Shown here: in pieces, positions 5,601-63,302 of the stretch
Layout of the letters: every line of letters starts with the position of its first letter
How positions within the stretch are numbered: the first letter of the stretch is position 1
Assembly: GCA_977017575.1 (NCBI GenBank)
Contig: CDRNVI010000048.1
Coordinates: 62,001-126,000 of the forward strand
Origin: Paramoeba atlantica
Taxonomy: Eukaryota > Protista > Discosea
Length of the DNA stretch: 64,000 nucleotides
Direction: 5' to 3'
Program-made: the position numbers and the translations under genes
Notes under the pieces: model-generated
Seen by the model: the letters and a program-made list of their open reading frames with translations, nothing else
What the model was told of the DNA's origin: nothing
Databases searched by the model: none

Positions 5601-6299
5601 AAAAGGCGGAAGAATTATTGAACGAAATGAGCCGAAATCCCACGTAGGAAGCACAGTGTGAATTACTTCGCACTAAAGGGCCTAGCGTCATAAGATCAAT
5701 CACACATGCTCGTAATGTTCGAGCTGTGACATGCCCCAAACTTGGTTCTACCCGGTGGATTTCTGATAAATTTGAAAGTATAAAGTATAGCTTGACTGGC
5801 CCGGCTCGGGTGTCAGTCACGCACACTTCCTGTACAATGGAAGGTCGGACGTTAACCTCATTCCCTTGCAAGAGAATTAAGAGGGCTGAAACTAGAGATT
5901 TACGATCCCGGCCGATCCCATCGGTCCTGGTTGAATTTACGTGGAAGAAAAGTCTTGGTGAAAACGCGAGTTCTAGAAATTCGGCGAAAGAAATAGCGAC
6001 CATTTTTTTACAGAAACTCATTCAATTGTTAAAAATCAAAAACAATATTCATATGAAGGTAGGAGAAACTAAACAAACATTTACTATTAAATAGAAAGCC
6101 CCTATATATTTTTGTTTCTCCTCTTTCGCTCTTTGGACTTGAGTGCAAATCTCTGCTGCGCGTATCCTTTGTCGTCTGATTCTTTTGCTTTAGCTGAGCG
6201 TTCTTTAAATTAAAGTACGTCCTCTGTGATTTTGACCCCTGCTCAGAACATTTTCCTATCCGACTAACGCCTTTTGAGGGGTTGAAGAAGTTCATCCAA

Positions 6300-6819
6300 T
6301 TGGTAAAACCTCTGACGCACGCGAAGCAGGTTGTCACGAGAACACTGCGAAGCGTTGGATTCAGCGATACGAGGAGACAGGAGACGTGGATAATAACCCG
6401 AGCTATAACCCTCATTGATGAAGGTACGCGAGATTTGCCTTATGGAATTCCGTCATGGTCGAACCTCGTGTCAACCCTTCAGTCCGAAAGGTTTTATTGT
6501 TCCCGGCGCTCTATCACGCGCACTTTAAAGCGTGAAGGCATCATTTTGCACACTGTCCCCCGTCATCCAGCTCTTACGGCTTCCCACAAGCAGAAACGAA
6601 TAGAGCTGTGCCGCGAGCTGTCGGAGTGGACCCCTCATGATTTTGAGCCCTCACCATTTTGATGAAAATAGTGTCACAATGCTAGCTTGGCCCCCTCAGC
6701 CTCCTGATCTCAACCCCATCGGAAATATTTGGGGACAAATTGAATCACACAAAAATACTAAATGTACCAAAAATAGGGGGGAATTGCGTGATGCAATACA
6801 TTCAGGGTTCAATTGCTGA
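6300..6819 (+). pseudogene. Tc1/IS630-family transposase remnant, catalytic core deleted
   Basis: HTH AREAGCHENTAKRWIQRYEETG; linker HPALTASHKQKRIELCRELSEWT; C-terminal WPPQPPDLNPIGNIW; frameshifts. Confidence 0.85.
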
Positions 6820-6956
6820 AAGTACTTTGTTGAAGGACTTTTCCCCCTCTAAAAGCCCGTACTGTTCTGTTTAACAAGTAAAGTACTACTTAACAAGCAA
6901 AGTTGATACGAGCAAAGTTGTAGATACGATCATTGTCGTTTTAGTATCGTTCTCCA

Positions 6957-7066
6957 TTTTTTTAGTCTCTTCGTTAAACGCGGCAGTAGTTTTCAAGGGG
7001 AAGCGCGCAGCAGTGGTGTCATCTAAGTTGAAAACAACCACTACATTTAATGAAGAGCCTAATAAA
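6957..7066. repeat. ~110-bp foldback (two ~40-bp imperfect inverted arms)
   Basis: TTTAGTCTCTTCGTTAAACGCGGCAGTAGTTTTCAA / TTGAAAACAACCACTACATTTAATGAAGAGCCTAA; solo arm at 38242. Confidence 0.75.
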
Positions 7067-7555
7067 GGATAAAAAGTGATAGAAAAAAGGTCAAAGTAGT
7101 AAAAAATACAGTGTCTTAAGAAGCTACGCAAGCGCCGATCCCGACCGATCCCACCCGATAAGTGACAGGGTCCTCCAGGTTTCAGCCCTCTAAGTGTACC
7201 TGTATTTACACACACAAGTCCGACCTGTTAGCCTCGGACCAGCAGGATTATAGGATACCTTACACATATAGGAAGTTTCTTTCCGAGCAATTATCCACTG
7301 TGGTTAAGAGCGAGCTCGAAAGTTTACGAGTACCACAATCCGTTCACGAGCTTACTAACATACTCGAAAATAATTCCATTACAGAACTTATTCAATGTGC
7401 TAAAGAGTTTCTTCAAGAGTGTGCTCTGTTGCGCGTTGCTCAGGAAAAATTTTCTGCTATGCATGATCGATCCATGGCCGCGTTAGTGTATCCTACGTTG
7501 CAACAACTCATAGAGTCCTCCGAGACTGCTCCTCTACACATGATTGATGCTATTA

Positions 7556-8449
7556 GTGGGTTGAAACCTGTGAAAGGCAAAACCTGGCAAAACCATAGTG
7601 GCAGTTAATAATTATTATAATGGAAATTATTAATCATTTCTATTATAAAAAAATCCCAATTATCAATAATTATTAATAATTTTTCAATGGTACCTAAAAT
7701 ACTCAATTTTGCGGCCGTCTTCGGGAAAAAATGAATCTGCGGGAACAAATTTCTCTTTCTTGCGGACTGGCACAATGTTCGGCAGGTGGCCTAAGGAAGG
7801 GGGTGGTGAAAGGCGGGTGTGGTGAAAGACCGGGGCGTGTTCTTAATTAATGTTTCCACGGTAAAATAATTATTATTTTTTAAACATAATTATTATTAAA
7901 GACTAAAATTATTAATACTTCTGCCACTATGGGCAAAACCCGCTTATGCTTCATAGATGTGGCGAAGCAAAGTGCTTTGTCAAAAATAGTGAAGAATATA
8001 CTTGGTCTCCATGCGCTGCAAAATATTTTTTGCGCTACAAAAGGTGAAACTTTTGAAAAAAATATTTTTCGAAATAAACCCCCAGAACGGGTAGCCGAGG
8101 TCTTGGCGCACATTTTCCACCTCCGTACTCGAGGACGACCCCCCCCCCTCGTATCAACAGGACGGGGCCGCCAAGCTCGGTATTTTCTGAAAAGAACATT
8201 GAAAAAAAAGTCAACTTGGCGAAAAACATGGCTTAAAAAATAGTTTTTCAAAATCGTTTCATCTATTGTATTTCGAGAGTTTGGGACCTATACTAGCTTT
8301 CTATGCCGTTGTTTTCACAAGATACCCCTTCTTGAAGCCGTGACACGCCTCCCGAAATGATGTCCCAAAAAATTGGTGTCCTGGCAAAACCAGGCGAAAC
8401 TGGGCAAAACCTGGCAAAACTCGGCAAAACTTAACAGGTTTCAACCCTC
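7556..8449. mobile_element. TWA-TSD element 2 (PIF/Harbinger-like, non-autonomous)
   Basis: TTA|GTGGGTTGAAACCTGT ... ACAGGTTTCAACCCTC|TTA (15/16 TIR); GGCAAAAC subterminal repeats at both ends; excision restores the flanking frame. Confidence 0.85.
8100..8310. repeat. Diverged copy of repeat family A nested in TWA element 2
   Basis: TTTTCCACC..GACCCCCCCC..AGGACGGGGCCGCCAAG and TTTTCAAAATCG..AGAGTTTGGGACCT match family A motifs. Confidence 0.55.
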
Positions 8450-9002
8450 TTAATGTGCACGTGAAGCGAGTTTCTAACAAGAACGAACTGCTGATTTGGG
8501 GTTCACTAATGTGGTTTTCGCCGGAGTGGATTGTGCTTTTCGCATGCCCGCGTAACAAAACATCGATTTCTGTTGAGCGCGCCGTTCACGCAGTCGAACT
8601 GGTTCTCCTATTTTTGAAACTACGGAAACCGATTGGTCTAACTACGTGACGTGCGAGGATTACGACTGGACTTCAGAGCTAAGCGACGTGGACTGGTGGA
8701 AGCAAGTTGGCAAAAAACGTTTTCCTTCCATATAGGGATGGGCACGCAAATGTGGTGGGGTCAAAATTTCTATAGCTTGGCCAATTTGTGTGATGCACCC
8801 GCATATTACCTTTAACAACAACCGTACGTTACTTCTCTAACAATGTCACAGCCTGTGATTCCATTCTTTCTGTATTTGCGAGGAAATATAATTCTCGGCA
8901 AGTGAGCATAGGAATCGATGTTGTGGCGACTCAGATGTTTCTGCGAGGTAACGAAAAATCATTAGCTCATCATGCAAGCAGTGCTAAATTAAAGAATAAA
9001 TA

Positions 9003-9302
9003 CTATCCCCCCTATTTAATAGGGCTACGTGCGACCCCCTTTAATAGGGCCATTTTGTCTGGAAGACCAAAATAGATCAAATTCTTTTTCTCGAATCCGC
9101 TGCGAAGGGGCGATTTTTTTTTCGTGCCTACCCCAACAACAAAAAGTGTGTCAAAAGCGAGCAGCAGGACCTTGTTTAACAACGATAAAAAAAGGCGCCG
9201 CGAAACGGCGCCGATTTTTTTCTTTCACATTATTTTCCATGTACCTCCCTTTAAAAGGGCATTTTTCCCAAAATCGGAGTCCTATTAAATAGGGGGGGAT
9301 AG
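9003..9302. mobile_element. 300-bp MITE with 21/22-bp TIRs and TA TSD
   Basis: TA|CTATCCCCCCTATTTAATAGG ... CCTATTAAATAGGGGGGGATAG|TA. Confidence 0.85.
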
Positions 9303-9402
9303 TAGTAACTAATGAACAATCCCGAACGAAGTATCTCTACTCTGAAAAATAGCGATCATAAAGACAGAGGCTCCTAATGTGAGCTTGCGTTCTCCATTTT
9401 TT

Positions 9403-9465
9403 ATAGATGATATAGATTTTATAGGTGATATAGATTTTATAGATGATATAGATTTTATAGATGAT
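9403..9465. repeat. 18-bp tandem repeat x3.5
   Basis: ATAGATGATATAGATTTT units at 9403, 9421, 9439, partial at 9457. Confidence 0.9.
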
Positions 9466-10335
9466 TGTAGATGATATTCGGTTAATCTACTAGCCGATTA
9501 GTACTAAATTAGTAATTACTCGTTGGTTGCATAGCTCAATGGGCGATCTTATCCGCATTACCCAATCCTAAGCCTGGGGAAGGTCCAAATCAGGACCGGG
9601 GGAGGAGGGTGGAGAAATTCCTTTTAAAACAAAAAGAGATATTTCCTCGAGGTTTTGATGACTGTTTAGAGTGCATACATGTTTTAAGCGTGGGTGGCTA
9701 TTAAGCTAGGATAGAATATATAAACCACTGTCCAGTTTATGACCATTGCCTATGACCAGTTACTGTGTCGGGGGGGGGCACAGTAAGTTGTCCTGGGGGT
9801 ATTTCGTGTGTCCCCCCCTCAGGAGGAGATCATTTTTAGATTTTAGATATTTGTTCTTTGAGCTTTTCAACACCTTTTATAAATTTTTCACGGAATTTTT
9901 AAAAGCGAGTCTGATAGCTACTCCACCGATAGCACAGAAGAACACGATACTGACGATGAGCGCGAAATTTCGGATCAAGAACTGGAGGTAGTTGATTTTT
10001 CGACTCTTTTCGATGAAAAAAGAGAAGACGGCTATACTTCATCCGAAGAAGACGAAAACAATGAGATGCGCAATCTAATCTTCTCGAGCAACACAACGTA
10101 CGTAAACGTCTTTTAAATAGAGGCGACCGCACAGCTGGAATCCCTGTTTCTGGGAAGAAAATTTATGCCTCTATATCTATCAAAGACAAGCGTTTAGCTG
10201 TCCGACTTTTCCGACACTATGAAGGACAAGCAGAGTGGTTCTCAAAGCTACAAAAAAAACTTTTCATGGCTACCAAAGGAAGGGTTTTTCTGAGATCACG
10301 TGATCAGCTACAAAAATGGAGGAAGCTTGTAGTCG

Positions 10336-11492
10336 ATGCCGCACGCGGAATGGGAAACAGAAAAAAGGTTGCGCACTCGTCCTCGTTCAACTGATCCTGT
10401 TGGAACTGAATTGCTTGAATGGTACACGAACTTACGCTCGCAAAATATGAGAGTATCGGTGGCGGCAGCAAAGGCGAGAGCTCGTGTTATAAACGGAACT
10501 CCAGTTTCGAATAAGTGGTTTTACCGTTGGAAACGACAGCATGATATTGTGCTAAGGTCTGTTCAGCGCACTACTACTCGCACCATACAAGAAATTACCG
10601 CATTGCTCAACTCTTTTCATCAATTCCTTTACAATATTCTTTTAGCAAGCATTGTTAGTATAATAATCAACCTGGATGAAATTCCTTTTTCCCTAAGTGG
10701 AAGTATGAATTCTCGGTCCACTTTAAGCGATCGCGGATCAAGAAATGTTATTTGAGAGGACCCCAATTGGGATCGCCGATGCTGCTCTTATTCCTTCTAA
10801 TTATTCCTGCAATAATTGGCATAATAAAAAGAGAATGTGGTTTCTCTCCATTCAAATTGCGTTGCGCGGTACTGCTAAGGCGCAAATGTAAAAAGTCGTG
10901 GGTTCTTTCTAACCCTTTTGGTTGGCTAATTGAAGAAAGTTCATCCGGTGTTATCACAAGTTCAATGATGGTGGGTAGCATAATTCCTTTTATTCGTGGT
11001 CAAGTAACTCCTTTGCTTAGTGGAACCGAAGTATGCTTGACTATCATGGATGGTGCCACTGGGCATACCACTTCTCCTGTGAAGCGTTGATTTTCAGAAT
11101 TTTCGAAACTGGCTATCATTCCAAGTGGCATGACTCAATTTGTACAAGCGATTGATACGGACTACGCAGCGAAGTTTCTGCATAATTACACAATTCAACA
11201 TTACCAGCCTTGGGTTTTGACTGGCGTCCGGAAGATAAAGTCCAAAAGTGCTGCTGAACTCATGGTACGATGGTTGGGAAAGGCGCATGAAAAAACTTTG
11301 AATGAATTTAACATAGTCTCATGCTTCGAAAAACTCGGCTACAGCAATGGTACCAACATTGCAATATCGCGCCTTCCCTATACGTTTACACTGAGCGTGC
11401 CGGACGTAATGATTGTTTTGTTTAAGGTATCAGACAAGGATGTTCTATTTCGTTGGAATCTTAGCAAGCAATGGGTTCCTCCTGATTTCTGA
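10336..11492 (+). pseudogene. pogo-like (CENP-B HTH + DDE_1) transposase pseudogene
   Basis: ELLEWYTNLRSQN..SNKWFYRWKRQH; INLDEIP; IMDGATGH; IPSGMTQFVQAID; internal stops and one frameshift. Confidence 0.9.
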
Positions 11493-12085
11493 GAAAAAAC
11501 AAGAATAAACAGGGCACGCATTCAATGTTACTGGGCAATACGTACTACTGCATTTAATTACCTCTAAATTAAGCAATTCAAAGTTACTACTACTACTACT
11601 ACTACAAATAAGTGGGGGGCCGCAGTAATTGTAATCTAAACAAGCTCATTGTTCTTTGTTTTAGCCCGTCCTGCGCGCACAAAATTCTCTTGATGAGATC
11701 TGCAAAGTGCAACAAAGTGGGGGGTCACTTTTCGTGATACATGTATTTCCAGTAGTATATTTATTGAGTATGTTAGCCTAACTTACTACTTAACCTTAGG
11801 TGTGTTTTGCTGGCAAGTGAAATGTACACCAGAAACAGCACCAGAGACAATATCGCCTTACATAATTCGATTTAGAAAACGCCTTCGGTTTTCTCCCACA
11901 TAACGACTTCTCTTGTTTTGGGGGGGGGGCGACCCCCCCCCCGATCATCAATTATATCAGAGCATTGCATACTGGAGCGTCGGTATAACTCAAGTGCTCC
12001 AATGGACTTGCCTCACAAGTTGTGACCAAAGTGCATCGAGTATGACATCTTGCGAACATGTCTACCCAACTACGGAGTAGTCTGA

Positions 12086-12235
12086 ATCGAAATGCAGTCT
12101 TTCGTCAAAGCATTCGTCGACGACCTCACGATTGTCACAATCACTCCGAGAGGGCTCCAACATGCAACCAACCATTTAGTCAAAGTGCTAACTGTCATGG
12201 GCCTTCGGCTCAATGTAAAGGGTCAAAACTACTGA
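12086..12235 (+). mobile_element. Non-LTR reverse transcriptase fragment
   Basis: Hand translation MQSFVKAFVDDLTIVT...MGLRLNVKG (FxDD and GLxLNxxK motifs); too short for the ORF track. Confidence 0.75.
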
Positions 12236-12294
12236 TACCCTAAAGAGTGAGAATAGCCCTTACTTTATTCTTCATCCTCTTTTCTGGACTGAAG

Positions 12295-27638: not shown

Positions 27639-30600
27639 TTACCAGTTCCCATTTCCTGGAGGGAAATGGTGCTGGCCTGGATAATATTCTGGAGGAAATG
27701 GATAAGGTGGGTACGGAGGATATTGAGCTGTTCTCAGTGCCGTAAGTGCGGGATGAATAAACCGTGACCGATACCCATCAAAAGGAATCATTTCTGGGCC
27801 GACGAATTCCGGGGGTGGGTGAAAGGGTGGCGGCATCTCATGATGAAAATAACTATCCTCGAGATCTTTCCTTTGCACCCGCTTTTGGTTTTGAGAGAGA
27901 GACCCATTTTCGGAGGTAGCTTTCGTTTTTCTGGAATCTCGTGCTGTTCTAGCTGTAGTGCTTGATTTCTCTCCGTGCAAAACTTCCGCAGACGTTCGAT
28001 TAAAACTTTTCCTGCGTAGGTCACGGCGAGCTCCTTTGTCATTCTTTGTACGCGGTGATGGTGATTCTAAAGGTTTAGCCTCCAATGAAGAGTCTCGAAT
28101 CTGTACCTGATCAGATTTTGTCACGTGCGATTCTAGAGTGGGATTAATGGTGGTCTTTTTCGGCATCGCAGCATAATCCTGAGTCAGTATTTCGTTTTCA
28201 GGTGTTTTAGTCTCACTAAGTTTGCTTTCACCATTCTTTTCGGTTGCTTTTTCTACTGGAATAGTACTTGGCAACGATTCTTTTTTCGTTGGGATGGTTC
28301 CTACTACCACTTCTTTTTCAAGTGGAAAGGTTCTTGATACCGCTTCCTTTTCTACTGGAATGTTTGGTATCGCTTCTGTTTCTACCGGGATGCTACACGT
28401 TACCGCTTCTGTTTCTACTGGGATGTTTCTACTGGTACTTGGTGCAGCTTCCTCTTCTATTTTCTTGATTTGACCGTCAACACGTTCTTTTTCGACTTCA
28501 TCAAACATTCTTTCGACTTCTTTCATTGTAAGAACAGCATTCTGGTTCCCCATGACAGAAACTATATTAAAGCGTTCGCCAGAACCAGCAACCTCTGAGT
28601 CTGCTTTCTTTGCGCGTTCTTCGCGCTTTAATAGCTTCCAGGCCTCCTCCAGGGCAAGCGGGCATCGTTGTACAAGTTCAGGGTACATTGCAGCATATAA
28701 GCGATACATTTCTTCACGGCGTTCGCCAAATTCACGAAAGAATTTCCCCTTTCTGTCCTCCGAACTGTGATCTTGTCTCGGTGGTCGGCGAGCCAATTCA
28801 TCTTCACTGCTGCTTAAGTCACTCAGCCTGCCCGAGCGGGACACAGGGGGTGGCAAATGTTCAGCACAATATTGAAGCTGCGCACGGCGAAGTTTTTGAC
28901 GATTATGCAGGTCTGCAATGGCAAGCGAAAGTCTAAGGGATGCTGTGCCAAGTAGACATTTATTGTTTAAGGATGGAGTGCGGATGACCGTGAACTGATG
29001 TTTTGGTAGGCGTATGGTTGAGTTGTCTAAATGTTTCTCAGATTCATCTGATGTGGTCGTCTGTTTATCTAAAGATGCGGCTTTGCTGTCTATTCTCTGA
29101 ACCACCTTTGCGTTTGATGCCGCCTTACCTCCTTTTCGATCTTGCTCTTCAAGTTTTACTAGTTTCACGGACTGGCATTCTCCTTTTTTTGCTTTATTCA
29201 AGGAAGAAACAGGACGCGATTGAGGTACTTCTTTTGTCGTACAATCTTTCACCTTTTGAGGCGTTTCCCGTACAGCCGATGATTCATGCGAGGTGTCTGA
29301 AGCCTTCCAGTATTCTGAACGAATTCGCAGAACCTTTCTCCTAGAAATCAGACATTGCTTGGCAGCTACTCTCCAAGAGAATGCTCTTAATTCCTCTGAT
29401 TCAGCGTGCGTAAAAATTTTGCAAGTATTTTCTTCCTTGTTCGTGCTCTCTTTTAAAGCCTGCTCATGGCCTTCTTCTTTCGTCGTTGTAGACTCTTTCT
29501 TTTTTGTAGACCCTTCCTTTGTTGTTGATTCTTCCTTTGTTGTTGATTCTTCCTTTGTTGTTGATTCTCCCTTTGTTGTTGATTCTCCCTTTGCTGTTGA
29601 TTCTCCCTTTGCTGTTGATTCTTTTATAGCTTGTTCTATCGATTTTGGAGTTAAGCTGCTAAGATCTTTAGTCGCGCTGTCGCGGAGCCGAATAGCTCGA
29701 CGCTTTCTAGCAACGGAATCCACCATGTAGAAGACTCCAGGGGGTCGACGTCCTGTGTGTGAAAGAACAATTTCTCCTATGGTTTCGGTGACACCCCCAT
29801 CGTTAAAACAGGAAGTCGCAATGATCATGAGACCATCTCCCCACCAGGTGTTGCCACCGCCAGCGTGTAAGGCGCGAATCGCGAGCCTACGGAATAAGTC
29901 CCTTGTGGCCGTCATGGGGTCAAGCATTGCGCTGTGTTTCGAAATTTGCTGACTTTCGCTGTCTTGAAACAATTTTTCTGCTCCCACTCCTTTCGGAATT
30001 TGGCTTTCCCGGAGCAGGTCGGCCCAGGAAAATGGTGTGGAGAGGGGGTGTTTGCTGTAAAAGCTCGGATGCTCTATAAAGTATGGGATGTGATCTTGCC
30101 ATGACTTTCTTTTGCGCAAGCACTCTTCCCTCTTTTGATCGATTTTTGAAACATGAGTTCTCGACGTCCGAAAACTCGAAGCTCTGGACTTTCGCATCCT
30201 TTCCCGTGAACGATTTCGGTCCTGGCTGTGACCTGTTTTTCGTGCATTACGGATAGGTGAATATCTTCGGGGACTGCATCGTCTGTCGTACGATCTGGAG
30301 CGTAATCGTCGCTCCCTATCATGTGAACGCCTCCTCGGTCTGTGAGAGCTGACTCTATCGGATCTGCGGTGACATGGACTGATTGATCTGAAGCGCTTTC
30401 GTGTACGCATTTCTTTTCCGTGTCTAGACCTTGAGCGACCGCGACGCTCCGATTTGTGGCGACGGTAAGACCGCTCACGATCTCTTGAGCGCTCTCTTCT
30501 CCGGTGTGGAGTCGGTGACGCCGACCTCTTACGATACTTGTTTCTGCGACTCAGACATTCCTTTTCCGTATTTTGCCGTAAGATGTTATGTGTTACTTTC

Positions 30601-31220
30601 GACGAACTTGACGTCGTTTTAGTGTGAAGACGATTCTCTGATTTATGCACTGAAGTTTTCTTCCCTGGAGAACAGGTCTTTTTTGTCTTCATATCGGACA
30701 TACCGTTCCGGTTTGAGAACGAAGAGGACTGCTTCCGCGTCTCCGAAGGGGTTGATATTGGCTGGATCTCCTTGACAGGCTCTGGTCCGTCTTTTTCTGA
30801 GACCTTTTGAGTACTACCATGTGCGGCGTCTATAGAAATTTCTTTAGCAGCTGACCCTGCAGACACCCCCCCTTTGCTTTGTGCAGAATTCGATGAATCA
30901 GAAGTAGAATCCCGCACAGTGTTTCTCTTCGCCTCGATCCTATCAGTTTCGGGGACTGAGACAGGCTCGGGTGAGAGAATTAAAGATGGAAGATCGCTCG
31001 AAGGTATTTTGCTTGAGGACTCCGCGTAGGAAGCGGAAAATTCAGACAAATGAGAGCGATTTTCAAAAAGTACAGCAATACTGTCCGAAAAATTCATGTC
31101 TAATGAAGTTGCAGCATTTTTTTTCTCGGTGAGTACGGAGAGTGGCATAGCCTTTAATAATGCACTAGCTATACTGTCTATGACACCTGAGGGGGGTGCG
31201 TTTTCCATGGGCGTTAGCAA
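27639..31220 (-). CDS. 1193-aa low-complexity protein with RS-rich domain and internal repeats
   Basis: RSRDRERS/RSRS tract, (K/E)ESTT repeats, IPVE repeats, Pro/Tyr-rich C-terminus. Confidence 0.8.
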   Translation of the reverse strand: MLTPMENAPPSGVIDSIASALLKAMPLSVLTEKKNAATSLDMNFSDSIAVLFENRSHLSEFSASYAESSSKIPSSDLPSLILSPEPVSVPETDRIEAKRNTVRDSTSDSSNSAQSKGGVSAGSAAKEISIDAAHGSTQKVSEKDGPEPVKEIQPISTPSETRKQSSSFSNRNGMSDMKTKKTCSPGKKTSVHKSENRLHTKTTSSSSKVTHNILRQNTEKECLSRRNKYRKRSASPTPHRRRERSRDRERSYRRHKSERRGRSRSRHGKEMRTRKRFRSISPCHRRSDRVSSHRPRRRSHDRERRLRSRSYDRRCSPRRYSPIRNARKTGHSQDRNRSRERMRKSRASSFRTSRTHVSKIDQKREECLRKRKSWQDHIPYFIEHPSFYSKHPLSTPFSWADLLRESQIPKGVGAEKLFQDSESQQISKHSAMLDPMTATRDLFRRLAIRALHAGGGNTWWGDGLMIIATSCFNDGGVTETIGEIVLSHTGRRPPGVFYMVDSVARKRRAIRLRDSATKDLSSLTPKSIEQAIKESTAKGESTAKGESTTKGESTTKEESTTKEESTTKEGSTKKKESTTTKEEGHEQALKESTNKEENTCKIFTHAESEELRAFSWRVAAKQCLISRRKVLRIRSEYWKASDTSHESSAVRETPQKVKDCTTKEVPQSRPVSSLNKAKKGECQSVKLVKLEEQDRKGGKAASNAKVVQRIDSKAASLDKQTTTSDESEKHLDNSTIRLPKHQFTVIRTPSLNNKCLLGTASLRLSLAIADLHNRQKLRRAQLQYCAEHLPPPVSRSGRLSDLSSSEDELARRPPRQDHSSEDRKGKFFREFGERREEMYRLYAAMYPELVQRCPLALEEAWKLLKREERAKKADSEVAGSGERFNIVSVMGNQNAVLTMKEVERMFDEVEKERVDGQIKKIEEEAAPSTSRNIPVETEAVTCSIPVETEAIPNIPVEKEAVSRTFPLEKEVVVGTIPTKKESLPSTIPVEKATEKNGESKLSETKTPENEILTQDYAAMPKKTTINPTLESHVTKSDQVQIRDSSLEAKPLESPSPRTKNDKGARRDLRRKSFNRTSAEVLHGEKSSTTARTARDSRKTKATSENGSLSQNQKRVQRKDLEDSYFHHEMPPPFHPPPEFVGPEMIPFDGYRSRFIHPALTALRTAQYPPYPPYPFPPEYYPGQHHFPPGNGNW
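29513..29621. repeat. Coding 18-bp tandem repeat x6 (ESTTKE/G)
   Basis: CT(T/C)CCTTTG(T/C)TGTTGATT units. Confidence 0.9.
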
Positions 31221-37936: not shown

Positions 37937-38230
37937 TTACGCCACCGGAATACTATCGCATTGGTCCACTGTATCAATAAGTGTATTGGTGAAATCGTAG
38001 AGTCTTGAACTGTTCAACGGATTACTCGCCATAACGTATGAACCTCTGAGCCTCAAATTTTCTGCAAGGTTAAATACCAGTAATGAATCTGGCAGCGAAT
38101 AAAAAGAAACCGTCCGGAAAATTCATTGTTCTTCAAAGAAATGGATCTTGGCAACGGTAAACTCTTAAAGCACGGAATCCCACTAAATTTGTTGTGCTAC
38201 AAGGAATTAGTGTTGGTGTCACTCATGCTG
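37937..38230 (-). pseudogene. Frameshifted LRR gene fragment, same family as 56058
   Basis: Hand translation HNKFSGIPCFKSLPLPRSISLKNNEFSG, then shifted LPDSLLVFNLAENLRLRGS..*. Confidence 0.65.
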
Positions 38231-38241
38231 TGCACTTCGCG

Positions 38242-38280
38242 TTGAAAACTACCACCGCGTTTAACGAAGAGCCTAAAAAA
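38242..38280 (+). repeat. Solo arm of the 6957 foldback
   Basis: TTGAAAACTACCACCGCGTTTAACGAAGAGCCTAAAAAA. Confidence 0.8.
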
Positions 38281-38382
38281 GAAAAATCTCCAATACATCA
38301 TGAATAATCTACTTTTTTGGGGGAAGAAGCTCGATTTTTCTGCAAAAATTGCGAAATTTCACACCGAATTTGTGCCGTTTTA

Positions 38383-38726
38383 GATGCCTTACCAATAGGG
38401 GCAGGAGTCGAATCTGTCGAAAAAAACGTCGTAGAATGGTAGCTGAGGTGCAAAACTCTTAAAACACGTTTTAGGACACGATTTTGGAAAAATAATATTT
38501 TTACTTTTTTTTGGGTCAAAATTTATTTTTTTTTGGTCGCCCCAAAATTTTCGGAAATTTTGTCGGACCCCTCCTGCGCGTACCAGGGGGGGTACCCACA
38601 GTGGGGGGTGGAAAATATCGCCGCGGCCTACTCTACCACTTCCCTGCGCTCGATTTTGAAAAGCAAAAAATTCGAAAAAACATTCTTGACGTATGCCCCC
38701 CCCATGGACCCCCCCACTAGACCCCC
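38383..38726. repeat. Repeat family A, copy 2 (inverted relative to 5140)
   Basis: Reverse-complement match to 5140-5600. Confidence 0.85.
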
Positions 38727-39307
38727 CTTTTTTTTCAATTTTTCATTTTTGGACCACCGGAGCCCCCTTTTATATTTTTTTCTTCTATTATATTGCTGTG
38801 TTTCTCTTTATATTTTCACTGTTTTTGTTCACTTTTTTTGCAATAATCGAGGGTAGAGCGGTAGTTATACAACCACCGCAATATTGTATGCAGTATGCAT
38901 ATTGTATACATATTGTATACAGGGGTACTTGTTGATGCGATAAATATTGCAAGGTGCTTAAAACGTACAGAAATTTATTTTTCCAGCATAAAACATAAAT
39001 ACGGTCCTCCACCTTACGGAGTCTTAACTAATATGGCGAACCGCTTCGCTTCTTCAATATACTGGATTACCATGTACGAAACGTTTTGTTTTCAAAGAAG
39101 AAACTATCTCGTGATAATGGGCAAATATTTTTAGGAACTCGAACTAGTATTTGAGGCTGATGTCCAAGCATCAGAACAACGAATTATTTACTGAGCTCAA
39201 AATTCGTGATGCATTAAGTGCAATGAATGTGATGTGAAGTTGGCATCACAATAGCACTGCGATGCGTTCAGGTGCATAGTCGCATCAAAAATGGAGATTT
39301 GCTATAC

Positions 39308-41379: not shown

Positions 41380-42132
41380 CAGTAGTATTCAGCCTCTTTT
41401 ACCCCCCCCCCCCTACAGGTCTTGCATTTTGTTCGATTTTGGAAATATTTTGTATGGGACTTTTTTCGACCCAATCGTTCCGAATCCGAGGTCCTTTTCA
41501 CTCGTGGGCACCTGTATCATACCTAAACCGGGAAAAAAACCGCAAAAAAGTCGATTTTTTTTTTCACAGAGTACATTTTTTTAAAAATTGGTACATTTGT
41601 TGGTGATTCATGAAGAAGAAGCACCGCCCCCTGTGCTTACCTTCCTGCCTCTTGTGCCCCGAGAAGCGCACGGCACTCGCGATCGATTGAGAGCGACTTG
41701 TCCTATAAGACACTCGAAAAATTTCATAAACTTAGCCCCGGGTCCATCATTGAAACTTTTCGCTTTTTTTCTGAAGATTAACCGGAAACGTTTAAGAATG
41801 CCTTCCGGGACTATAGTAAACGTTTTCTTTTGGTCAAGGAGGCTAAAGTGCATATGACTAAATACTAAAGATTACTTTGCACTCCTTTTACACGTCTTCT
41901 GACCTACTTTACTACTGTTCCTCATCCGAAGCATTCAAAAAAATGAGCCCAAAAAAGTTGTAATTAGCTTTTTTGACCCCTACCTGGCTAGGGGGGTAGG
42001 GGGTCGCTCGAGTGAAAAGGGCCTCGGATGCGGAACGATTGGGTCGAAAAACGGTGGTTTGTACCAAATATTTCCAAAATCGGACAAAATACAAGACCTG
42101 TAGGGGGGGGTAAAAGACGCTGAACACCACTG
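41380..42132. mobile_element. 753-bp Tc1-type non-autonomous element with ~130-bp TIRs, TA TSD
   Basis: TA|CAGTAGTATTCAGCCTCTTTTACCCC...; right end reverse complement CAGTGGTGTTCAGCGTCTTTTACCCC...|TA; arms align ~130 bp. Confidence 0.9.
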
Positions 42133-54328: not shown

Positions 54329-54508
54329 GGGGAATGGAGGGGTTGGTAATGGAATTTTTGTATAGAAAAGCTTGAAAACCGTTAAGAAATACGTAAAAAA
54401 TGGTGTAGATAGAAAAAAATACTTTTTTTAGCAAACGATTGATAAATGCATATCACGGGTTTCATACTTGACTGACGCACAAACCGGCTTGTCTTCCCCC
54501 CCATAGGC

Positions 54509-56691: not shown

Positions 56692-56913
56692 AGATCACAT
56701 CAAAGATCTGACAATAATTTTAATGCTTCATAGAAAGAAGCAAACAAAGAAATAGTAGAATCACAACGGTTTATACAGAAATACAGTTTATATAGGAATA
56801 GAAATACGTGGACATACAAGCTACATGTACAAGTCTGGACATACATACAAGCTACATGTATCTAGCTAGCTAGAGGTTATCAACCTTATTGTCTTAAGGT
56901 ATGTGCCCTAGAT

Positions 56914-58317
56914 TCAAAGTTTTTTTTCATCAATCAAAGAGGTCTCGAGCGCTTTCATATCACGGTGTAACAGTAATGCATTTTCCATATCGTCGCATTC
57001 AAGTGAAGGACATATTCCTAGGTACTCCAAAAGCTGTGTAGCAGAGTAGACCTCGCCCTTACCTGAACTTATCATTTTACCCAAGACACACTGAAGGGTG
57101 CCGCCAAACGTTTTAATTACATCACTGGTAAGAAATTTAATTAGGGAGGTTGCAAAAATCTGTATATCGCTATGCTTCGTAGAAGACGGACTATTACTTC
57201 TCTGAGGATACTCTTGAGAGCTCTCAAAATTCGAAAGTTTCATGACGATATCCGAAGAGGAATTCACGTTTAATCTCGAACTTACATAAACATTTTGAAT
57301 TATGGGATTTCCATGAAAGAGTCGCGAAGAGTGTAGTGTTGCGAAGGCACGCAATACATGTACTACAGATCGACGCACTATTCCCTCGTTTTTTCCCATT
57401 TTCGTTAGATAGTATTCAAGGTTTCCCTCTGGAAAGTGTTCTAAAAGCAAGAAGCCTAAGGAGAGAGATTCCTCCCACCAAGTAGAATGCAAGACAGAAA
57501 GATAACGACACTGTTCCGCAAGATGAAGGCATCGCATTTCTAGGCGAATACGGTGTTGCATTTCGGTGAGAGATTTAGCCGCAATAAGTTTGATTACGTA
57601 ATATTGGCTATCAAGCGTCCCTTTTACAAGGTTGCTACTACTATGACTATTTTTGTTTAAACAAATGCTACGTGCTTCCGAGTTATTCGAAGGGCTGAAC
57701 GTGACTTGATAGGGCTGCCCAGTGGTATATAAAACCCCACGTACACTCAGAGATTCAAGAACACTTGAGCTTGTATTCGTTTGCTTCGTCCGAGAATACG
57801 ATTTGGTTGTAAGCCCTCCGAATTTTTCGGCCACTTCCCAATCACCCTTCTCTAATGAATCATCGGCTTTTGTCGCAAAATGTACATTAAATACGTCGTC
57901 AGAGTTGTCGGTCTCTGTCGGAGATAACAAATCCGCCGGTAAACTACGTCCTCTACCTTTACCTCTCGTATAGCTACTTATGAGATCTTTCTCTTTAACA
58001 TCACTGTGTGCGAAAAGAGTGGGAGCTGTCACGGGGCATTGATGTCCCTTATTATTTCGCGTACCGTTTCCTCTCGCTATTTCCGGGCCCAGACCACGTT
58101 GCTGTGGGGTAAGAGAAAAAGTTGCGGAGGATCGGACGTACGTTTCTGAGCTTTCCCGAAATCCGATTCCAACCATCGTGTGTCGTCTTCTTCGGCGGTT
58201 CGGGAAGTCACTGAGCGCACCGGTGATCTCAGGTGTCTTTGTGGGAGTGGGCGGAGGCTCGAGACGATTACGGGGAGTCAGCTGGGGAGTACTAGGGGGT
58301 GTACGCCATGGGTTCAT
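56914..58317 (-). CDS. Protein pseudokinase
   Basis: YVIKLI, LLLEHFPEGNL, HGN in place of HRD, NFE in place of DFG. Confidence 0.75.
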   Translation of the reverse strand: MNPWRTPPSTPQLTPRNRLEPPPTPTKTPEITGALSDFPNRRRRRHTMVGIGFRESSETYVRSSATFSLTPQQRGLGPEIARGNGTRNNKGHQCPVTAPTLFAHSDVKEKDLISSYTRGKGRGRSLPADLLSPTETDNSDDVFNVHFATKADDSLEKGDWEVAEKFGGLTTKSYSRTKQTNTSSSVLESLSVRGVLYTTGQPYQVTFSPSNNSEARSICLNKNSHSSSNLVKGTLDSQYYVIKLIAAKSLTEMQHRIRLEMRCLHLAEQCRYLSVLHSTWWEESLSLGFLLLEHFPEGNLEYYLTKMGKNEGIVRRSVVHVLRAFATLHSSRLFHGNPIIQNVYVSSRLNVNSSSDIVMKLSNFESSQEYPQRSNSPSSTKHSDIQIFATSLIKFLTSDVIKTFGGTLQCVLGKMISSGKGEVYSATQLLEYLGICPSLECDDMENALLLHRDMKALETSLIDEKKL

Positions 58318-58603
58318 AACACAAAAAAATAGAATACCTTTTAATGGCCGCGCTTCAAAACTATAAAGAAAAAACTATGAAGAGTGCCTATTCAGCGATT
58401 GTTAAATTATCTGGCATGTTAGAAAGTAAGATTTTTTCGCTACAAGACTATTAGAAGTCCCACAATCACTTGTACTGCATGTTACCAGCTTTACACTAGA
58501 AGCCTCGTACGTCTCGTAAAAAGTAGGAATAAAGAATCAGAAAGTCGTCAGCCCTCGTTGACACCGTCTTTCACAATTCGCTGGTCTACGTACTAAATAC
58601 TAT

Positions 58604-59260
58604 TTACGCGGACAAATCGTACTTCGATTTTGCCCCATTCACCACTTGTGTGAGATAATGGTAAAAGAAATCACAGTACAGTAATGTTTGTATGGTACCC
58701 GCAACCCAGCTCACGTAGGACACGTAGCCCTCCACTAGATAGCGGTAAATCCAGTTCAGGACGTAAAAAAAGCGATACGCTCCAAGACAAAATATATAGT
58801 GCGAAGTTAGCGCCTCATAGCGCTCTGTGTTCTCCAGAAGAAATATTTGTGGTAGGATAGCGACCGACTCTAAATACTCGCTGAACGTCCAGAGAACTTC
58901 TCGGCCTTCATGTAGAGTATGGCGATGAAACGTGAGTGCGAGAATCGCACAGAAGCCGATAAGGTACTGAACACGGAAGCTGTCGTTGACTCTGTCGTAT
59001 GAAGCCTTCCATGGGTTTCGGCAACGCATCAGGTAACAAATGTGATAGGAGGTAAACAGAAATATCATTTTCATCAACGAGTTGTAAGCACTGACGTACC
59101 GGGAGAACAGGTCAACGTAGCGCGTCGTGAATACCATCGCATAGAGAACTTGTGTTTTTAAGGAGATCCCCGCGGAGGTTCGGTGGCGTAACATTTTTGT
59201 GAGAAGAATGAGCACCGCGAGAAGGTGAAGCATATCACCGATCAACCGAAATAAGTTCAT
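58604..59260 (-). CDS. ERD2: ER lumen protein-retaining (KDEL) receptor
   Basis: MNLFRLIGDMLHLLA..SAGISLKTQ..RYVDLF; YLESVAILPQ; LGAYRFFYVLNWIYRY. Confidence 0.97.
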   Translation of the reverse strand: MNLFRLIGDMLHLLAVLILLTKMLRHRTSAGISLKTQVLYAMVFTTRYVDLFSRYVSAYNSLMKMIFLFTSYHICYLMRCRNPWKASYDRVNDSFRVQYLIGFCAILALTFHRHTLHEGREVLWTFSEYLESVAILPQIFLLENTERYEALTSHYIFCLGAYRFFYVLNWIYRYLVEGYVSYVSWVAGTIQTLLYCDFFYHYLTQVVNGAKSKYDLSA

Positions 59261-59536
59261 GGGTGGGCAAAAAATAGTAAGACACTAGCAACTTTAAGAC
59301 TTTTTGAAAAGAAAACAAATAGGTGTGATAAACGCAAGTATTCACGCATCTACAATTTGACAAAATCTATATCGTATATTCACCGCCCAGGAAAATAATG
59401 TCGATATTTGTCCCTTTTTTTAACTAACGTCATCACACATCCTAATCACTGCTACAAACACAATTTATTATTGGGTACCATGGTTCTTGACCACCGCGAC
59501 CTATTGATACCCAGGTCTACACCCCTCCACCTCTTC

Positions 59537-61033
59537 TTACGAATTTTCCCCGTCTGTGCCATACTCATTACCACTAGCCACGGCACTGTACGCGGCCCCA
59601 GATCCTCGCTCCCCTTCCCGTGGCCCCCCAAAGAACTCCTTCACCTTACTCCCCACCCCTCGCAGCGCTCCAGGCAGCGACACGCTCCAGAACACGTGAT
59701 GTGGGAGCAGCCCAGGGCACGTGCGCTCGCCTTGTCGGTACCGCAGCAATGCTCCCCCGATAAAATAAACCAACACAGCGCTAACGAGCAGAAAGAACAC
59801 GATGGCTCCTCTAGAAAGTCCTGAAGTTGACGCAATAAAAGTATTTACCGCGCTTTCCTCTATTTCTTCTGTCGAAGCCGCCAATCTTGGATCCGGAACC
59901 ACTGCCGGGGCTACGGTGAGCTCGACTGGAATCATATTTGTTTCATTCTCCCTTTGCTCTGGCATCTTCGCAGCCAGGTACAAATAAAAAGGCCGCGGAC
60001 TGACTTTATTCGTTACCGGGCAGCACGCCGGGGAGGCCAGCAGCCCGACAGGGTTACTATAGGACTCACTACAAATCGCCGTCGTGAAATTTCGCCGTAG
60101 CATCTCCGGGCTCACCTCCGGACTGTGCGCGAGACACAACTGCAGCCCAGAGTATCCATTCGGCTGGGAGGGCGGCAGAAACGAACTCGCCGCCTTCGCC
60201 AGAAACGCCATACGGAGATGCTCCCCGGTAACCCTTAGCACTTGAAAAGGAATCCCCAACGTCCCCTCCTTCTCCCCTCCCTGGCTACTGTCTTTTACCT
60301 CCTTACCCGGGGCCGGCAACAAATACACCCGACTCAGTCCCTCCATCTCCAACGGGGGGATACACAACCGGCTGTTGGCGACGTAGGAATAGAAGGCGTA
60401 GGCGATTACTTGATGGCTACTGCTACTGCTGCTACTGTGACTACTACTGCTGCTACTCCCCCCCACCGCCTCCACCACAATCTCACACGCGAGTACCCCA
60501 CTTGTGCTCTTCGCCGCGAGTGGGGCTAAGTCCGCGGCGGCTAGATGGAGAAACCCCTCGAGAGGGGTCGCGGAGAGCGTGAAGGACTGATTCGCGTTGG
60601 CAAGAGCTCCAGAGGATGCGTGGAGGATTACGGTCATGCGTGTGTTATGGATTTTGGGGTTTGTAGAGGAAGAGGAAGAGGAAGAAGAACTTGAAGGACT
60701 AGAACTCGGTGAGACGCTCTCTCCCCGGGGATGTTCCTCAATGCCAAAGATTAAATCGGTGGAACCATCCGGGAGGGGGTAGGTGAAGGACATGCGGTAG
60801 TGATGGGGGGAGGGGAGGGGCTCGTGTGGGGTGAACGTAAAATTGCCTTGGGTGGCGTCACAGAGCATGACGTCGGTGTAGTCGGGGAGAAGGGGGGAGG
60901 GGGGAGGGGTGGGGGTGGGATCGGGAGCGAGTAGGGAGGTGGTGAGGAGGAGGGAGAGGAAGGGGAGGCAAAGGGGGGTGAAGAGGAAGAGGAAAGGCGG
61001 CGGTAGGGTAGAGCCGCTTTCCAGAGAGCGCAT
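59537..61033 (-). CDS. Type I membrane protein, ATG27/mannose-6-phosphate-receptor-like tail
   Basis: Hydrophobic N-terminus; TM then YFIGG..G..LLPHHVFW; YxxPhi motif YSAV. Confidence 0.7.
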   Translation of the reverse strand: MRSLESGSTLPPPFLFLFTPLCLPFLSLLLTTSLLAPDPTPTPPPSPLLPDYTDVMLCDATQGNFTFTPHEPLPSPHHYRMSFTYPLPDGSTDLIFGIEEHPRGESVSPSSSPSSSSSSSSSSTNPKIHNTRMTVILHASSGALANANQSFTLSATPLEGFLHLAAADLAPLAAKSTSGVLACEIVVEAVGGSSSSSSHSSSSSSSHQVIAYAFYSYVANSRLCIPPLEMEGLSRVYLLPAPGKEVKDSSQGGEKEGTLGIPFQVLRVTGEHLRMAFLAKAASSFLPPSQPNGYSGLQLCLAHSPEVSPEMLRRNFTTAICSESYSNPVGLLASPACCPVTNKVSPRPFYLYLAAKMPEQRENETNMIPVELTVAPAVVPDPRLAASTEEIEESAVNTFIASTSGLSRGAIVFFLLVSAVLVYFIGGALLRYRQGERTCPGLLPHHVFWSVSLPGALRGVGSKVKEFFGGPREGERGSGAAYSAVASGNEYGTDGENS

Positions 61034-61045
61034 AAAGGTAAGATT

Positions 61046-61095
61046 CTTGTGAAATGAAGAATATAAAAGGCGAAGAAGTAAATGAATGTGAAAAG
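61046..61095 (-). promoter_or_regulatory. Putative trans-splice acceptor
   Basis: Minus strand TTCACATTCATTTACTTCTTCGCCTTTTATATTCTTCATTTCACAAG|AATCTTACCTTTATG. Confidence 0.6.
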
Positions 61096-61303
61096 CAGAT
61101 ATGGTTTGTTTTTCTCTTTTATGGAAATTTTCGAGTATAACAAGAGTTGTTTTGAACTATGAAGCTCACCTATCAAGTAGAAAAAAGAAAACAGATTCAA
61201 AGGCGCGTGCGACATGATCCTGAGTCACAGGTTTAAATTTAGAGGAAGAGCGTCCGCTCAGGCTTGTGTGAGGTTCCTTTAAAGAAGGAACCAGCATAAA
61301 AAA

Positions 61304-61549
61304 CTATTTTTTCCTGTAAAGCTCTTCAAATTTTGCGAATGTTGCGGAGCAGATCATACCAGCCTGTAAGTGACGCTCGAGGCACCGCCTCATACAATCT
61401 TCTTCCCACCAGGTCAGTCGGTGAGTCCAGTAGGAGTGCACACATCGAGGACTACATGCTTCTGCCGCACTCATGTGTAGCCGATCCTCTTGAAGTCCTT
61501 TGAGAAATGAGAACTCTTGCTCCCACTCCGCGCTAAATCGAGAAGGCAT
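61304..61549 (-). CDS. Small Tim chaperone (twin CX3C)
   Basis: CSPRC-x15-CMRRC, 81 aa. Confidence 0.85.
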   Translation of the reverse strand: MPSRFSAEWEQEFSFLKGLQEDRLHMSAAEACSPRCVHSYWTHRLTWWEEDCMRRCLERHLQAGMICSATFAKFEELYRKK

Positions 61550-61957
61550 ATCTATAAATTCGTAAAAACCTTATTGTATTGTTCTATTTTGTTTTATAAG
61601 GAGTAGCGCTGTCAACATAATTTAAAATACAGTTACATTGTACATTTCGCTTGATTACTGAAAATCTGTTTTACCTCTATTATAACTTTTCGACTTTACG
61701 CCACTCGGGTTGAACCTTCATAACGTAGAAGCACCTATAGTGTACATCCTTGTAAACTTTATATCCCTCTCGAAGATTCCACTTTTGCCTGAAAATTTTG
61801 ATGAACCTTCTTCGGATGCGAAAGTCATCGAGCGCTTCGTGTTCTTGGAGCTTGCGAGAGTAATTAGTTTATGGTGGGTAAGATATAAATTTATTTACGT
61901 TATTGACAGAAATCATAAATTATGAACGCGGGCGGGTGCTGACGTTCTCATTCGTTA

Positions 61958-63302
61958 TAGGGTTGAAACCTGTGGTTTCAATGGAGGATAACATCATTGA
62001 GATGTGCGCACAGTGGATAACTACGCGCATTCGCCAACTCTCTGATCTGCTTTGGAATGCAGAATGCTTTCGGTGGAAATTTTGCAAGCGAGAATTGTAC
62101 CGCGGCACGGTGGTTATGTTAGATGCTGAGTAGAAGTTTGTAAACGAGTGGAAATCTAGGCCAGATTGTTTGTGTACATTTTTTAAGGATGATGCTAGAG
62201 ACAAAGAAGCAACAAAAGATTACCGCGACCGTATAAAGTGAGAACTTTACATTTCTGGGATCAGTAATGTAGGAAAGTGCCCAGCACATGCCAAGAAATC
62301 GGATGTAACATATACAAAGCTAACGAAAAGTGAAATTCTGAGGAAAAATGAAAAGTTGAAACTCATACACGATGAAGAACAAACTTCCAAGAGAAAGTTT
62401 CGCAAGTATTCCAATCAGATGGACAAGAAAATGTTTAATCAGAACGAATAATTTGGTGAAAGTGAAGCATTATTGCGCCAAAAAAATATTTTTCTCCAAT
62501 TTTCAAATATTGGTTTGAAACAAGTATGTTTTCTTTTAGAGTGTCAGATTATTAAAAATACAAACTTTTTTCACGGTTTATCACTATGAACTGCGCACAA
62601 TAACACAATTAATTAAGTTGTCTGCTGGAAGCCGAACCGTAACGCGCACTGATGGGTGGCGAGCGAGTCGCTCGCTGGGAAAAGACTTGCGGCATGAGAC
62701 AGTTAATCGTCGACGATCTTTGGTGCACACCAACACTGTTGAACGCATGAGTGAGATACTCAAGAAGGCAGTACGATCCCGTGGGAATGGGACCCTTGGG
62801 TGCTTTGATGAAGAAAGAAAAGATTGACCAAAGTTCAGCGGAGACGTCGTCAATGGTCTGAAGATCGGAAACAGCGAGGGAGATCCTTTAAAACAGCTGT
62901 GCGAAGATCTCTAATTAATGTGAAGACTCATCTTTTTAGAAGCGAAATCAAAAGAAATAAGTAGTAGCGGCCCATAAACGTAAAAAGATATCTGCATTTA
63001 TTTTTTTCAAAAAAGGCGCAATAATGCTTCACTTTGACCAAAAATTTATTCGTTCGTTATTATAATGTTATCAGAATCCGTGATACTATCCTCAGCGGTA
63101 AAAGAGTGGAGGAAGGCGGGTGTCCGCTAATTATTAGATAGGGTGATTTTTACTGAGAAAAAAGAATATCAGAATAATTTCAGTAAGGGCACGACGGAGG
63201 TCAAGTATTCTTCACTATTTCTGACTAAGTACTTTTCTTCACTACGTCAGAGTGGACTTCGCGGGTTTTGCCAGGTTTTGCCTTTCGTAGGTTTCAACCC
63301 TC
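61958..63302. mobile_element. TWA-TSD element 3 (PIF/Harbinger-like)
   Basis: TTA|TAGGGTTGAAACCT ... AGGTTTCAACCCTC|TTA; right end is the reverse complement of element 2's left end; left end lacks subterminal repeats. Confidence 0.6.
62540..62914 (+). pseudogene. Merlin (IS1595/ISXO2-like) transposase remnant
   Basis: GS..TDGWRA..LG..HETVN..HTNTVE..LKK; after one TGA the frame continues to GDPLKQLCEDL*. Confidence 0.75.

Follow-up and report, generated by a model that had tools for sequence, protein, structure and literature searches.

Probable non-autonomous PIF/Harbinger derivatives with shared ends and lineage-specific subterminal repeats in a Paramoeba atlantica assembly

Transposons of the PIF/Harbinger superfamily are recognized by a set of defining features, among them a 3-bp duplication of the target TWA (TAA or TTA) (PMC13668399, PMC9710019). 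The long forms carry two genes, with DDE_Tnp_4 as the transposase domain, and short derivatives that keep the ends arise from them by internal deletion (PMC13668399, PMC9710019, PMC2836001). The Myb-like protein of Harbinger3_DR is known to bind a 9-bp subterminal motif (PMC9710019). Here we describe three elements, copies 1 to 3, bounded by terminal inverted repeats (TIRs) in a 64,000-nucleotide stretch of DNA assigned to Paramoeba atlantica (GCA_977017575.1, contig CDRNVI010000048.1, positions 62,001 to 126,000 of the forward strand; hereafter the window), together with sister copies and related loci fetched from the genome (labelled L002 to L009). PIF/Harbinger elements and Tourist-like MITEs (miniature inverted-repeat transposable elements), such as rice Ping/Pong with mPing, zebrafish Harbinger3_DR, and Harbinger-1M_cIno of Caenorhabditis inopinata, resemble them in the TWA target, the 3-bp duplication, and TIRs of about 12-16 bp, and the two-gene long forms with end-preserving short derivatives also have counterparts here. 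The three copies are very probably non-autonomous members of a small PIF/Harbinger radiation, whose differing interiors came about by internal deletion and later nesting of other transposons. Their positions in the window, target-site duplications (TSDs), and ends are as follows.

5881-7190, plus strand: copy 1, non-autonomous element, 1310 bp; TSD TAA at 5878-5880 and 7191-7193; TIRs GAGGGCTGAAAC at 5881-5892 and 7179-7190; ends read TAA GAGGGCTGAAAC...GTTTCAGCCCTC TAA
7556-8449, minus strand: copy 2, 894 bp; TSD TTA at 7553-7555 and 8450-8452; reversed relative to the transposase direction of L003 and L004; ends read TTA GTGGGTTGAAAC...GTTTCAACCCTC TTA
61958-63302, plus strand: copy 3, 1345 bp, in the transposase direction; TSD TTA at 61955-61957 and 63303-63305; ends read TTA TAGGGTTGAAAC...GTTTCAACCCTC TTA

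The initial annotation had described three copies with G(A/T)GGG(C/T)TGAAAC-type ends and matching TAA or TTA duplications of 3 bp, and this description holds. The window contains six matches to the degenerate 12-mer GWGGGYTGAAAC, five of them exact and one with a single mismatch. They form three inward-facing pairs (5881/7190, 7556/8449, and 61958/63302), all three with equal flanking triplets. By arithmetic, about 0.03 exact matches are expected in the window by chance, and a shuffle control allowing up to one mismatch gave a mean of 1.3. The family end pattern reads GAGGGYTGAAAC, and the TIR core common to all lineages described below spans 12-16 bp (GAGGG[T/C]TGAAAC). Seven paired elements, namely copies 1-3 and those at L002-L005, have identical TAA or TTA triplets on both sides, each true end lying directly 3' of TWA, and none of the decoy sites with two mismatches is flanked by TWA. 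The flanks match when read as 3 bp and mismatch when read as 2 bp or 4 bp.

The boundaries of copies 1 and 2 can also be read from the frame that they interrupt:

5648-8649, plus strand: host frame into which copies 1 and 2 are inserted; segments 5648-5880, 7194-7555, and 8453-8649

In-silico removal of copy 1 with one TAA and of copy 2 with one TTA joins the three segments into a single open frame of 263 codons, which is open only at excision offsets that are multiples of 3; the restored frame is thus independent evidence for the exact boundaries of both copies. A hAT identity considered for this frame was rejected, as significant Pfam matches are lacking in all three of its pieces, and no paralogue of it was found among the fetched loci.

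What lies between such ends in longer copies was read from genes called on assembly ENA ERZ24900291, in which the window is part of contig ctg3974l. The sister copies were reached through spurious or decayed open reading frames (ORFs): the ORF of the Tc1 remnant in copy 1 pointed to the predicted protein P0001 and locus L002, a 50-amino-acid (aa) piece of the copy 3 ORF to P0002 and L003, and the downstream ORF of L003 to P0003 and L004. Further loci, among them L005, L006, and L009, were found by a search with a piece of the L004 transposase. The longer forms, in the coordinates of their loci, are listed here.

L003, 5837-9354 (3.5 kb): element with TTA/TTA flanks, TIR GAGGGTTGAAACCTG, and GTTTTGCC repeats
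L004, 3118-7774 (4.66 kb): element with TAA/TAA flanks, TIR GAGGGTTGAAACCTG, and GTTTTGCC repeats
L004, 5271-5744 and 5716-6228: upstream partner ORF, split by one frameshift
L004, 6394-6975 and 6944-7513: transposase, split by one frameshift
L005, 4006-6313: element with TAA/TAA flanks and the same TIR core
L009, 3860-5413: transposase-only element, 1.55 kb, with flanks TTA and TAT and the same TIR core

The long form encodes a partner protein (ORF1) of about 330 aa upstream of a transposase of about 370 aa with the DDE_Tnp_4 domain (PF13359), which Pfam detects in L004 (1.2e-9), L005 (4.3e-10), and L007 (2.4e-10), with 38.5-40.7 bits against a cut-off of 24.8 bits; the nearest Atlas clusters of the transposase are eukaryotic DDE_Tnp_4 proteins. 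In L009, the transposase is an uninterrupted 370-aa ORF (P0018) between the family TIRs, but the conserved RVERFF motif reads RVKRFF (the presumed catalytic E is K) and ORF1 is missing. The DDE_Tnp_4 gene of L003 is a truncated remnant. L006 has an intact 334-aa ORF1 upstream of the transposase, with homologous ORFs in L003, L004, and L005, and its related DDE_Tnp_4 copy follows a single recognizable GAGGGGTGAAGC end, while L007 and L008 contain DDE_Tnp_4 fragments with no recognizable ends. Within the window, Pfam found no DDE_Tnp_4 among the 56 open frames of three transposon-rich parts, which yielded only Tc1/pogo remnants and small host genes. Scans of JGI metagenomes with the end patterns of copy 1 and of the GTTTTGCC lineage returned 0 hits each.

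As judged from the sequence, the family combines the TWA duplication, DDE_Tnp_4, two genes, and short TIRs that characterize PIF/Harbinger elements. The PIF/Harbinger signature noted at the outset is borne out by the TWA duplications and by DDE_Tnp_4 between the same ends, and the autonomous-type copy with this domain that the initial annotation proposed to look for exists with the same ends at L004, L005, and L009; the Myb/SANT ORF expected beside it was not found, and the partner ORF encodes an orphan protein. By analogy with Harbinger3_DR and Ping/Pong, the transposase would recognize and cleave the shared TIR.

Copies 2 and 3, both of the GTTTTGCC lineage, are internal-deletion derivatives of this two-gene element of 3.5-4.7 kb, as their sequences align piecewise with it. 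Copy 2 corresponds to L004 in three blocks: 7553-7594 equals 7777-7736, 7964-7998 equals 7712-7678, and 8168-8416 equals 3371-3131 at 83.6% identity. Read in reverse, it comprises about 280 bp of the L004 5' end at 84% and about 115 bp of the L004 3' end; since it has no coding sequence and consists of ends only, copy 2 is MITE-like. One further segment of it belongs to a repeat that is abundant in the genome ("family G", described below):

8051-8340, no strand assigned: family-G-like segment in copy 2, just inside the right-end repeat array

This segment is retained at the same position over 288 bp in copy 2, 175 bp in L004, and 40 bp in L003, and it is part of the GTTTTGCC-lineage backbone. 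Its depth in copy 2, given here and below as the summed depth of assembled contigs and thus indicative of rough repeat depth only, is about 80-108 times the unique level.

Copy 3 preserves a different part of the same element, including remnants of both genes:

61980-62047, plus strand: ORF1 (partner gene) fragment, about aa 81-104 of P0002; equals L004 5537-5604 at 100%; fused in frame to the next block
62047-62454, plus strand: transposase C-terminal tail; equals L004 7115-7519 at 95.6%; in-frame stops at 62131 and 62239
63264-63302, minus strand: right end of copy 3, with the TIR and two GGCAAAAC units (minus-strand reading); homologous to the left end of copy 2

Three colinear blocks of copy 3, the first of which is the TIR, align with L003/L004 at 95-100%, and 62047-62454 together with 63037-63303 cover L004 7115-7775, a stretch that holds the C-terminal tail of the transposase as well as the 3' end; the tail block also aligns with the tail of the 370-aa DDE_Tnp_4 protein P0018. 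The ORF of copy 3, listed as unknown in the initial annotation, turns out to be a piece of the partner ORF joined to the C-terminal tail of the transposase, a fusion that two internal deletions produced and that is now interrupted by two in-frame stops. Direct comparison of copies 2 and 3 aligns 7556-7594 with 63264-63303 (93%) and 7932-8010 with 63196-63272 (75%). The view that the interiors are unrelated therefore does not stand for these two copies, since one backbone is common to both of them and to the two-gene element. As is the case for Tourist-like MITEs, both have ends in common with an autonomous-type element and no intact coding sequence. Copy 2 retains only the two ends; what is left of copy 3 is one end, a small piece of ORF1, and the tail of the transposase. 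In the left TIR of copy 3, base 1 is changed from G to T. Given that it also lacks one repeat array, copy 3 is probably immobile.

It is this left end that invites another interpretation, namely that copy 3 consists of two independent solo ends lying 1.3 kb apart, with TTA matching by chance of TWA. The left end offers only about 15 bp of family sequence, with a mutated first base and no subterminal repeats, and because every end sits at TWA, a matching TWA duplication is worth about 1 bit only. The interval between the ends, however, is colinear with L003/L004 in both order and orientation, from the ORF1 piece through the transposase tail to the 3' end, as is expected from two internal deletions in one element, and a pair of solo ends is extremely improbable.

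Both derivatives have in addition become hosts to other, unrelated transposons, which nested in them later:

7594-7931, no strand assigned: nested MITE in copy 2 ("family A"), with 11-bp TIR CATAGTGGCAG
62455-63039, no strand assigned: nested Merlin-derived MITE in copy 3, 585 bp, with 25-bp TIR GGTGAAAGTGAAGCATTATTGCGCC and 8-bp TSD AATAATTT / AAAAATTT

Each of these nested elements brings its own TIRs and an 8-9 bp TSD, and neither is present in the sister copies. The "family A" MITE duplicated one GGCAAAAC(C) unit of its host element, which gives the 8-9 bp TSD, and once it is removed, copy 2 aligns with copy 3 and L003/L004. The Merlin MITE of copy 3 is present in neither L003 nor L004, and an independent insertion 89% identical to it is found at L002 2703-3293. 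The Merlin remnant originally proposed for copy 3 is real: the MITE contains a transposase fragment that matches the Merlin ORF of L003 in tblastn (3e-5), and this ORF is Pfam-positive (DDE_Tnp_IS1595, 5e-10). Related insertions occur in the long forms. Nested in the Harbinger copy of L003 (6478-7781) is a compact Merlin element, about 1.3 kb long, whose 40-bp TIRs are imperfect and whose 281-aa ORF is open; about 155 bp of the host element are deleted there, and no TSD is visible. L004 harbors a nested 1.85-kb element (3443-5297) with a 9-bp TSD ATGTTGGAG and TIRs GGssAAAGTmAAGGAATATTGCATAAG, which are similar to the TIRs of the Merlin MITEs in copy 3 and L002; its IS1595-like ORF is decayed (Pfam 0.088 only).

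Given that Merlin-type sequences reside in four of the seven copies, it might be asked whether the 12 bp that the ends share arose by convergence or derive from another superfamily, such as ISL2EU or elements mobilized by Merlin, with the DDE_Tnp_4 gene as a passenger. ISL2EU is a Harbinger relative in the Repbase classification and makes a 2-bp TSD; the family described here resembles it in having a DDE transposase related to the IS5/ISL2 group. All duplications read, however, are 3-bp TWA, not 2 or 4 bp, and the Merlin pieces have different TIRs (GGnnAAAGTnAAG...) and 8-9 bp duplications, and are missing from sister copies. Moreover, DDE_Tnp_4 is the only gene between the family TIRs in two lineages and at four loci (L004, L005, L009, and the remnant in L003). 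An origin of the ends outside PIF/Harbinger is therefore highly improbable.

Copy 1 differs from copies 2 and 3 in its content:

6311-6810, plus strand: Tc1/mariner transposase remnant, about aa 46-171 and 280-335 of a full-length Tc1, with the DDE core deleted
6958-7067, no strand assigned: foldback, a segment also found beside copies of the abundant "family G" repeat; matches L006 6562-6671

The Tc1 remnant reported by the initial annotation is confirmed by Pfam (HTH_Tnp_Tc3_2, 3.4e-7; DDE_3, 1.3e-3) and by tblastn against the 370-aa Tc1 ORF of L008. That ORF (7077-8189, minus strand) is an apparently intact Tc1/mariner transposase with DDE_3 and HTH_Tnp_Tc3_2, and shares only about 44% identity with the remnant. 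A second copy of the copy 1 family occupies L002 470-3548, with the same TIRs and a TAA/TAA duplication. When two extra nested insertions are removed from L002, the two copies are 96.1% identical across the whole 1.3-kb interior, a span that takes in the foldback and the Tc1 remnant with the same internal deletion; the remnant was thus acquired before the lineage spread and has been carried since. The depth of the copy 1 interior (5-17 times the unique level) suggests that there are several more copies, and the foldback reaches about 100-230 times that level. A further nested element of 1.1 kb is found in the sister copy (L002 855-1954), with TIR TGTGACCCCCCCTTTAAT and GTAC on both flanks. Copy 1 shares only the 12-bp TIR core with autonomous-type elements, and we infer from sequence that it belongs to the non-autonomous Harbinger derivatives. 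It represents a separate lineage characterized by CGATCCC repeats, in which the Tc1 remnant and the other repeat fragments were gained before the spread and now form a fixed interior, and its mobilization would need a master with CGATCCC repeats.

The composite interior of copy 1 is what most resembles a Pack-type vehicle, a minimal TIR cassette that repeatedly captures unrelated DNA and so bears a different cargo in each copy. Pack-MULEs, which are elements of this kind, capture host-gene fragments between their TIRs. The copies described here are likewise TIR-bounded elements with foreign interior sequence, such as the Tc1 remnant of copy 1, which has neither TIRs nor a TA duplication and lies beside fragments of two other repeats, so that capture could account for it; the GTTTTGCC-lineage backbone also holds a family-G-like piece. 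In contrast to Pack-MULEs, the foreign DNA consists here of other transposons, either nested with their own TIRs and TSDs, as in copies 2 and 3, where they are missing from sister copies, or fixed across the family. Furthermore, what fills copies 2 and 3 comes from the genes and ends of the element itself, the interior of copy 1 is one fixed composite that L002 shares at 96% identity, and no host-gene fragment was found in any copy, let alone fragments that differ between copies. The Pack-type reading is largely refuted for copies 2 and 3, and very improbable for the family. The alternatives offered by the initial annotation have thus fared differently: secondary insertions are evident, and there is no sign of foreign DNA capture by a Pack-type vehicle. 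Exchange of cargo is contradicted by the interiors themselves, which are conserved within each lineage apart from later nesting, copy 1 being matched at 96% in L002 and copies 2 and 3 being subsets of L003/L004.

Apart from the TIR core, the elements are marked by short subterminal repeats, which share one direction between the two ends in copies 1 and 2, as first noted, and are confined to the right end in copy 3, in which the left set is deleted:

5903-5920, plus strand: left subterminal repeats of copy 1, CGATCCC twice, 10-bp period
7136-7153, plus strand: right subterminal repeats of copy 1, CGATCCC twice, same strand as the left repeats
7576-7593: left repeats of copy 2, GGCAAAAC twice, on the same strand as the right array
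8380-8431, plus strand: right repeat array of copy 2, five GGCAAAAC-type units, 10-bp period

In all seven paired elements, the repeats lie on one strand with a 10-bp phase, and complete elements have them at both ends in the same direction. In the L002 sister of copy 1, CGATCCC occurs three times on the right, with the strand unchanged from the left end; L003 and L004 have identical GTTTTGCC repeats on a single strand at both ends; L005 and L009 have GGGTGCG repeats beside the common TIR core; and the GAGGGGTGAAGC end of L006 is accompanied by GCCCGTGTTC repeats. At least four lineages thus share the TIR core and differ in their 10-bp repeats and fast-diverging partner proteins. Between lineages, the transposase is 59-71% identical in its first part and 51-56% in its tail, and the partner protein 31-46%. 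In three respects, this family departs from the PIF/Harbinger elements named above: the partner ORF is not recognizable as Myb/SANT/MADF, the repeats at the two ends strictly keep one direction and a 10-bp phase, and several lineages combine one TIR core with different repeats.

Each lineage has its own 10-bp-phased subterminal repeat and inserts at TWA with a 3-bp duplication. By analogy with the known systems, the lineage-specific partner would bind the phased repeats, recruit the transposase, and decide which elements a master mobilizes, and the combination of lineage-own repeats with a fast-evolving partner would restrict cross-mobilization. Copy 2 would then still be a competent substrate.

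These features lend themselves to a model of modular recognition, which we put forward tentatively and regard as rather doubtful at present. In this model, a single chassis of TIR and transposase would serve several lineages that do not cross-mobilize, each set apart by an orphan, non-Myb coiled-coil partner that reads the lineage-specific repeats; copy 1 would be a cargo-laden lineage whose partner is unfound or extinct.

Several observations weigh against the derivation of copies 1-3 from PIF/Harbinger masters, or against the part assigned to the partner protein. The sample consists of nine loci of the genome, and no fully intact master is among them: L004 has one frameshift in each gene, L005 is without the N-terminal half of ORF1, and L009 combines the E-to-K change with the loss of ORF1. 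No paralogous empty site for any of the seven insertions was found among the fetched loci. As for copy 1, no CGATCCC repeat pair was encountered in any fetched locus except L002, no autonomous CGATCCC element was found, and because Tc1 TIRs and a TA duplication were looked for around its Tc1 remnant and not found, insertion followed by decay is indistinguishable from capture. In the partner ORF, whose N-terminal region is unmatched and whose C-terminal part is a long coiled coil, Pfam reveals no Myb/SANT, MADF, or trihelix domain at E values up to 0.1 (coiled-coil noise only), and its best Atlas score is 0.62. An AlphaFold model built from a five-row alignment has a predicted local distance difference test (pLDDT) score of 55.7, too poor to use, with only a long C-terminal helix predicted confidently. 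That the partner may bind DNA is an assumption drawn from analogy.

The insertions lie in a genome whose organization recalls that of kinetoplastids. The region 12295-61215 of the window contains 30 ORFs of at least 150 aa. Apart from five, each of which overlaps a longer minus-strand ORF, all of them occupy the minus strand, and the region forms a polycistron-like cluster of ordinary eukaryotic genes, including those for an endoplasmic reticulum retention receptor, an E2 succinyltransferase, and a NIF phosphatase. The E2 protein gives the best housekeeping match, and its nearest Atlas cluster is euglenozoan. From the one-strand clusters and this match, the gene clusters appear kinetoplastid-style, and the genome is read as probably euglenozoan. 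Transposon islands are found in the window at 1-12 kb, 37.5-42.3 kb, and 61.2-64 kb.

Several further features were observed in passing. The abundant "family G" repeat occurs in the window at 5140-5604 and, in reverse, at 38217-38760, as well as at L006 5991-6700; it starts with G-rich GGGGGTCCAGG-type motifs, and its depth is 80-230 times that of unique sequence. The interval 41406-42110 holds an inverted repeat in which 41406-41454 pairs with 42062-42110 (94%) and 41462-41504 with 42009-42051 (95%); the element is MITE-like and about 700 bp long, and its arms measure about 100 bp. A tandem repeat whose 18-bp unit occurs at least six times lies at 29475-29618, inside a 1193-aa minus-strand ORF (27639-31220), and an open frame of 841 aa with no Pfam match runs off the window start on the minus strand (2-2524).

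In kinetoplastids, only retrotransposons had been described before the Merlin elements of Bodo saltans and Perkinsela (PMC8101967), and a few other DNA transposon superfamilies are present in Diplonema (PMC10161547). The host of the elements described here, with its kinetoplastid-style clusters, carries Harbinger, in contrast to the kinetoplastid DNA transposons of PMC8101967, which are Merlin only. The Harbinger copies are 96-99% alike, and the radiation is young. Given that the three copies are textbook non-autonomous Harbinger derivatives, the idea of a cargo-swapping vehicle can be dropped. If the modular-recognition model were true, this would also be the first PIF/Harbinger radiation with recent activity to be documented in a kinetoplastid-type euglenozoan. 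The combination of a shared TIR, lineage-specific phased repeats of one direction, and a faster-evolving partner offers a clean natural experiment on how Harbinger elements may choose their own ends.

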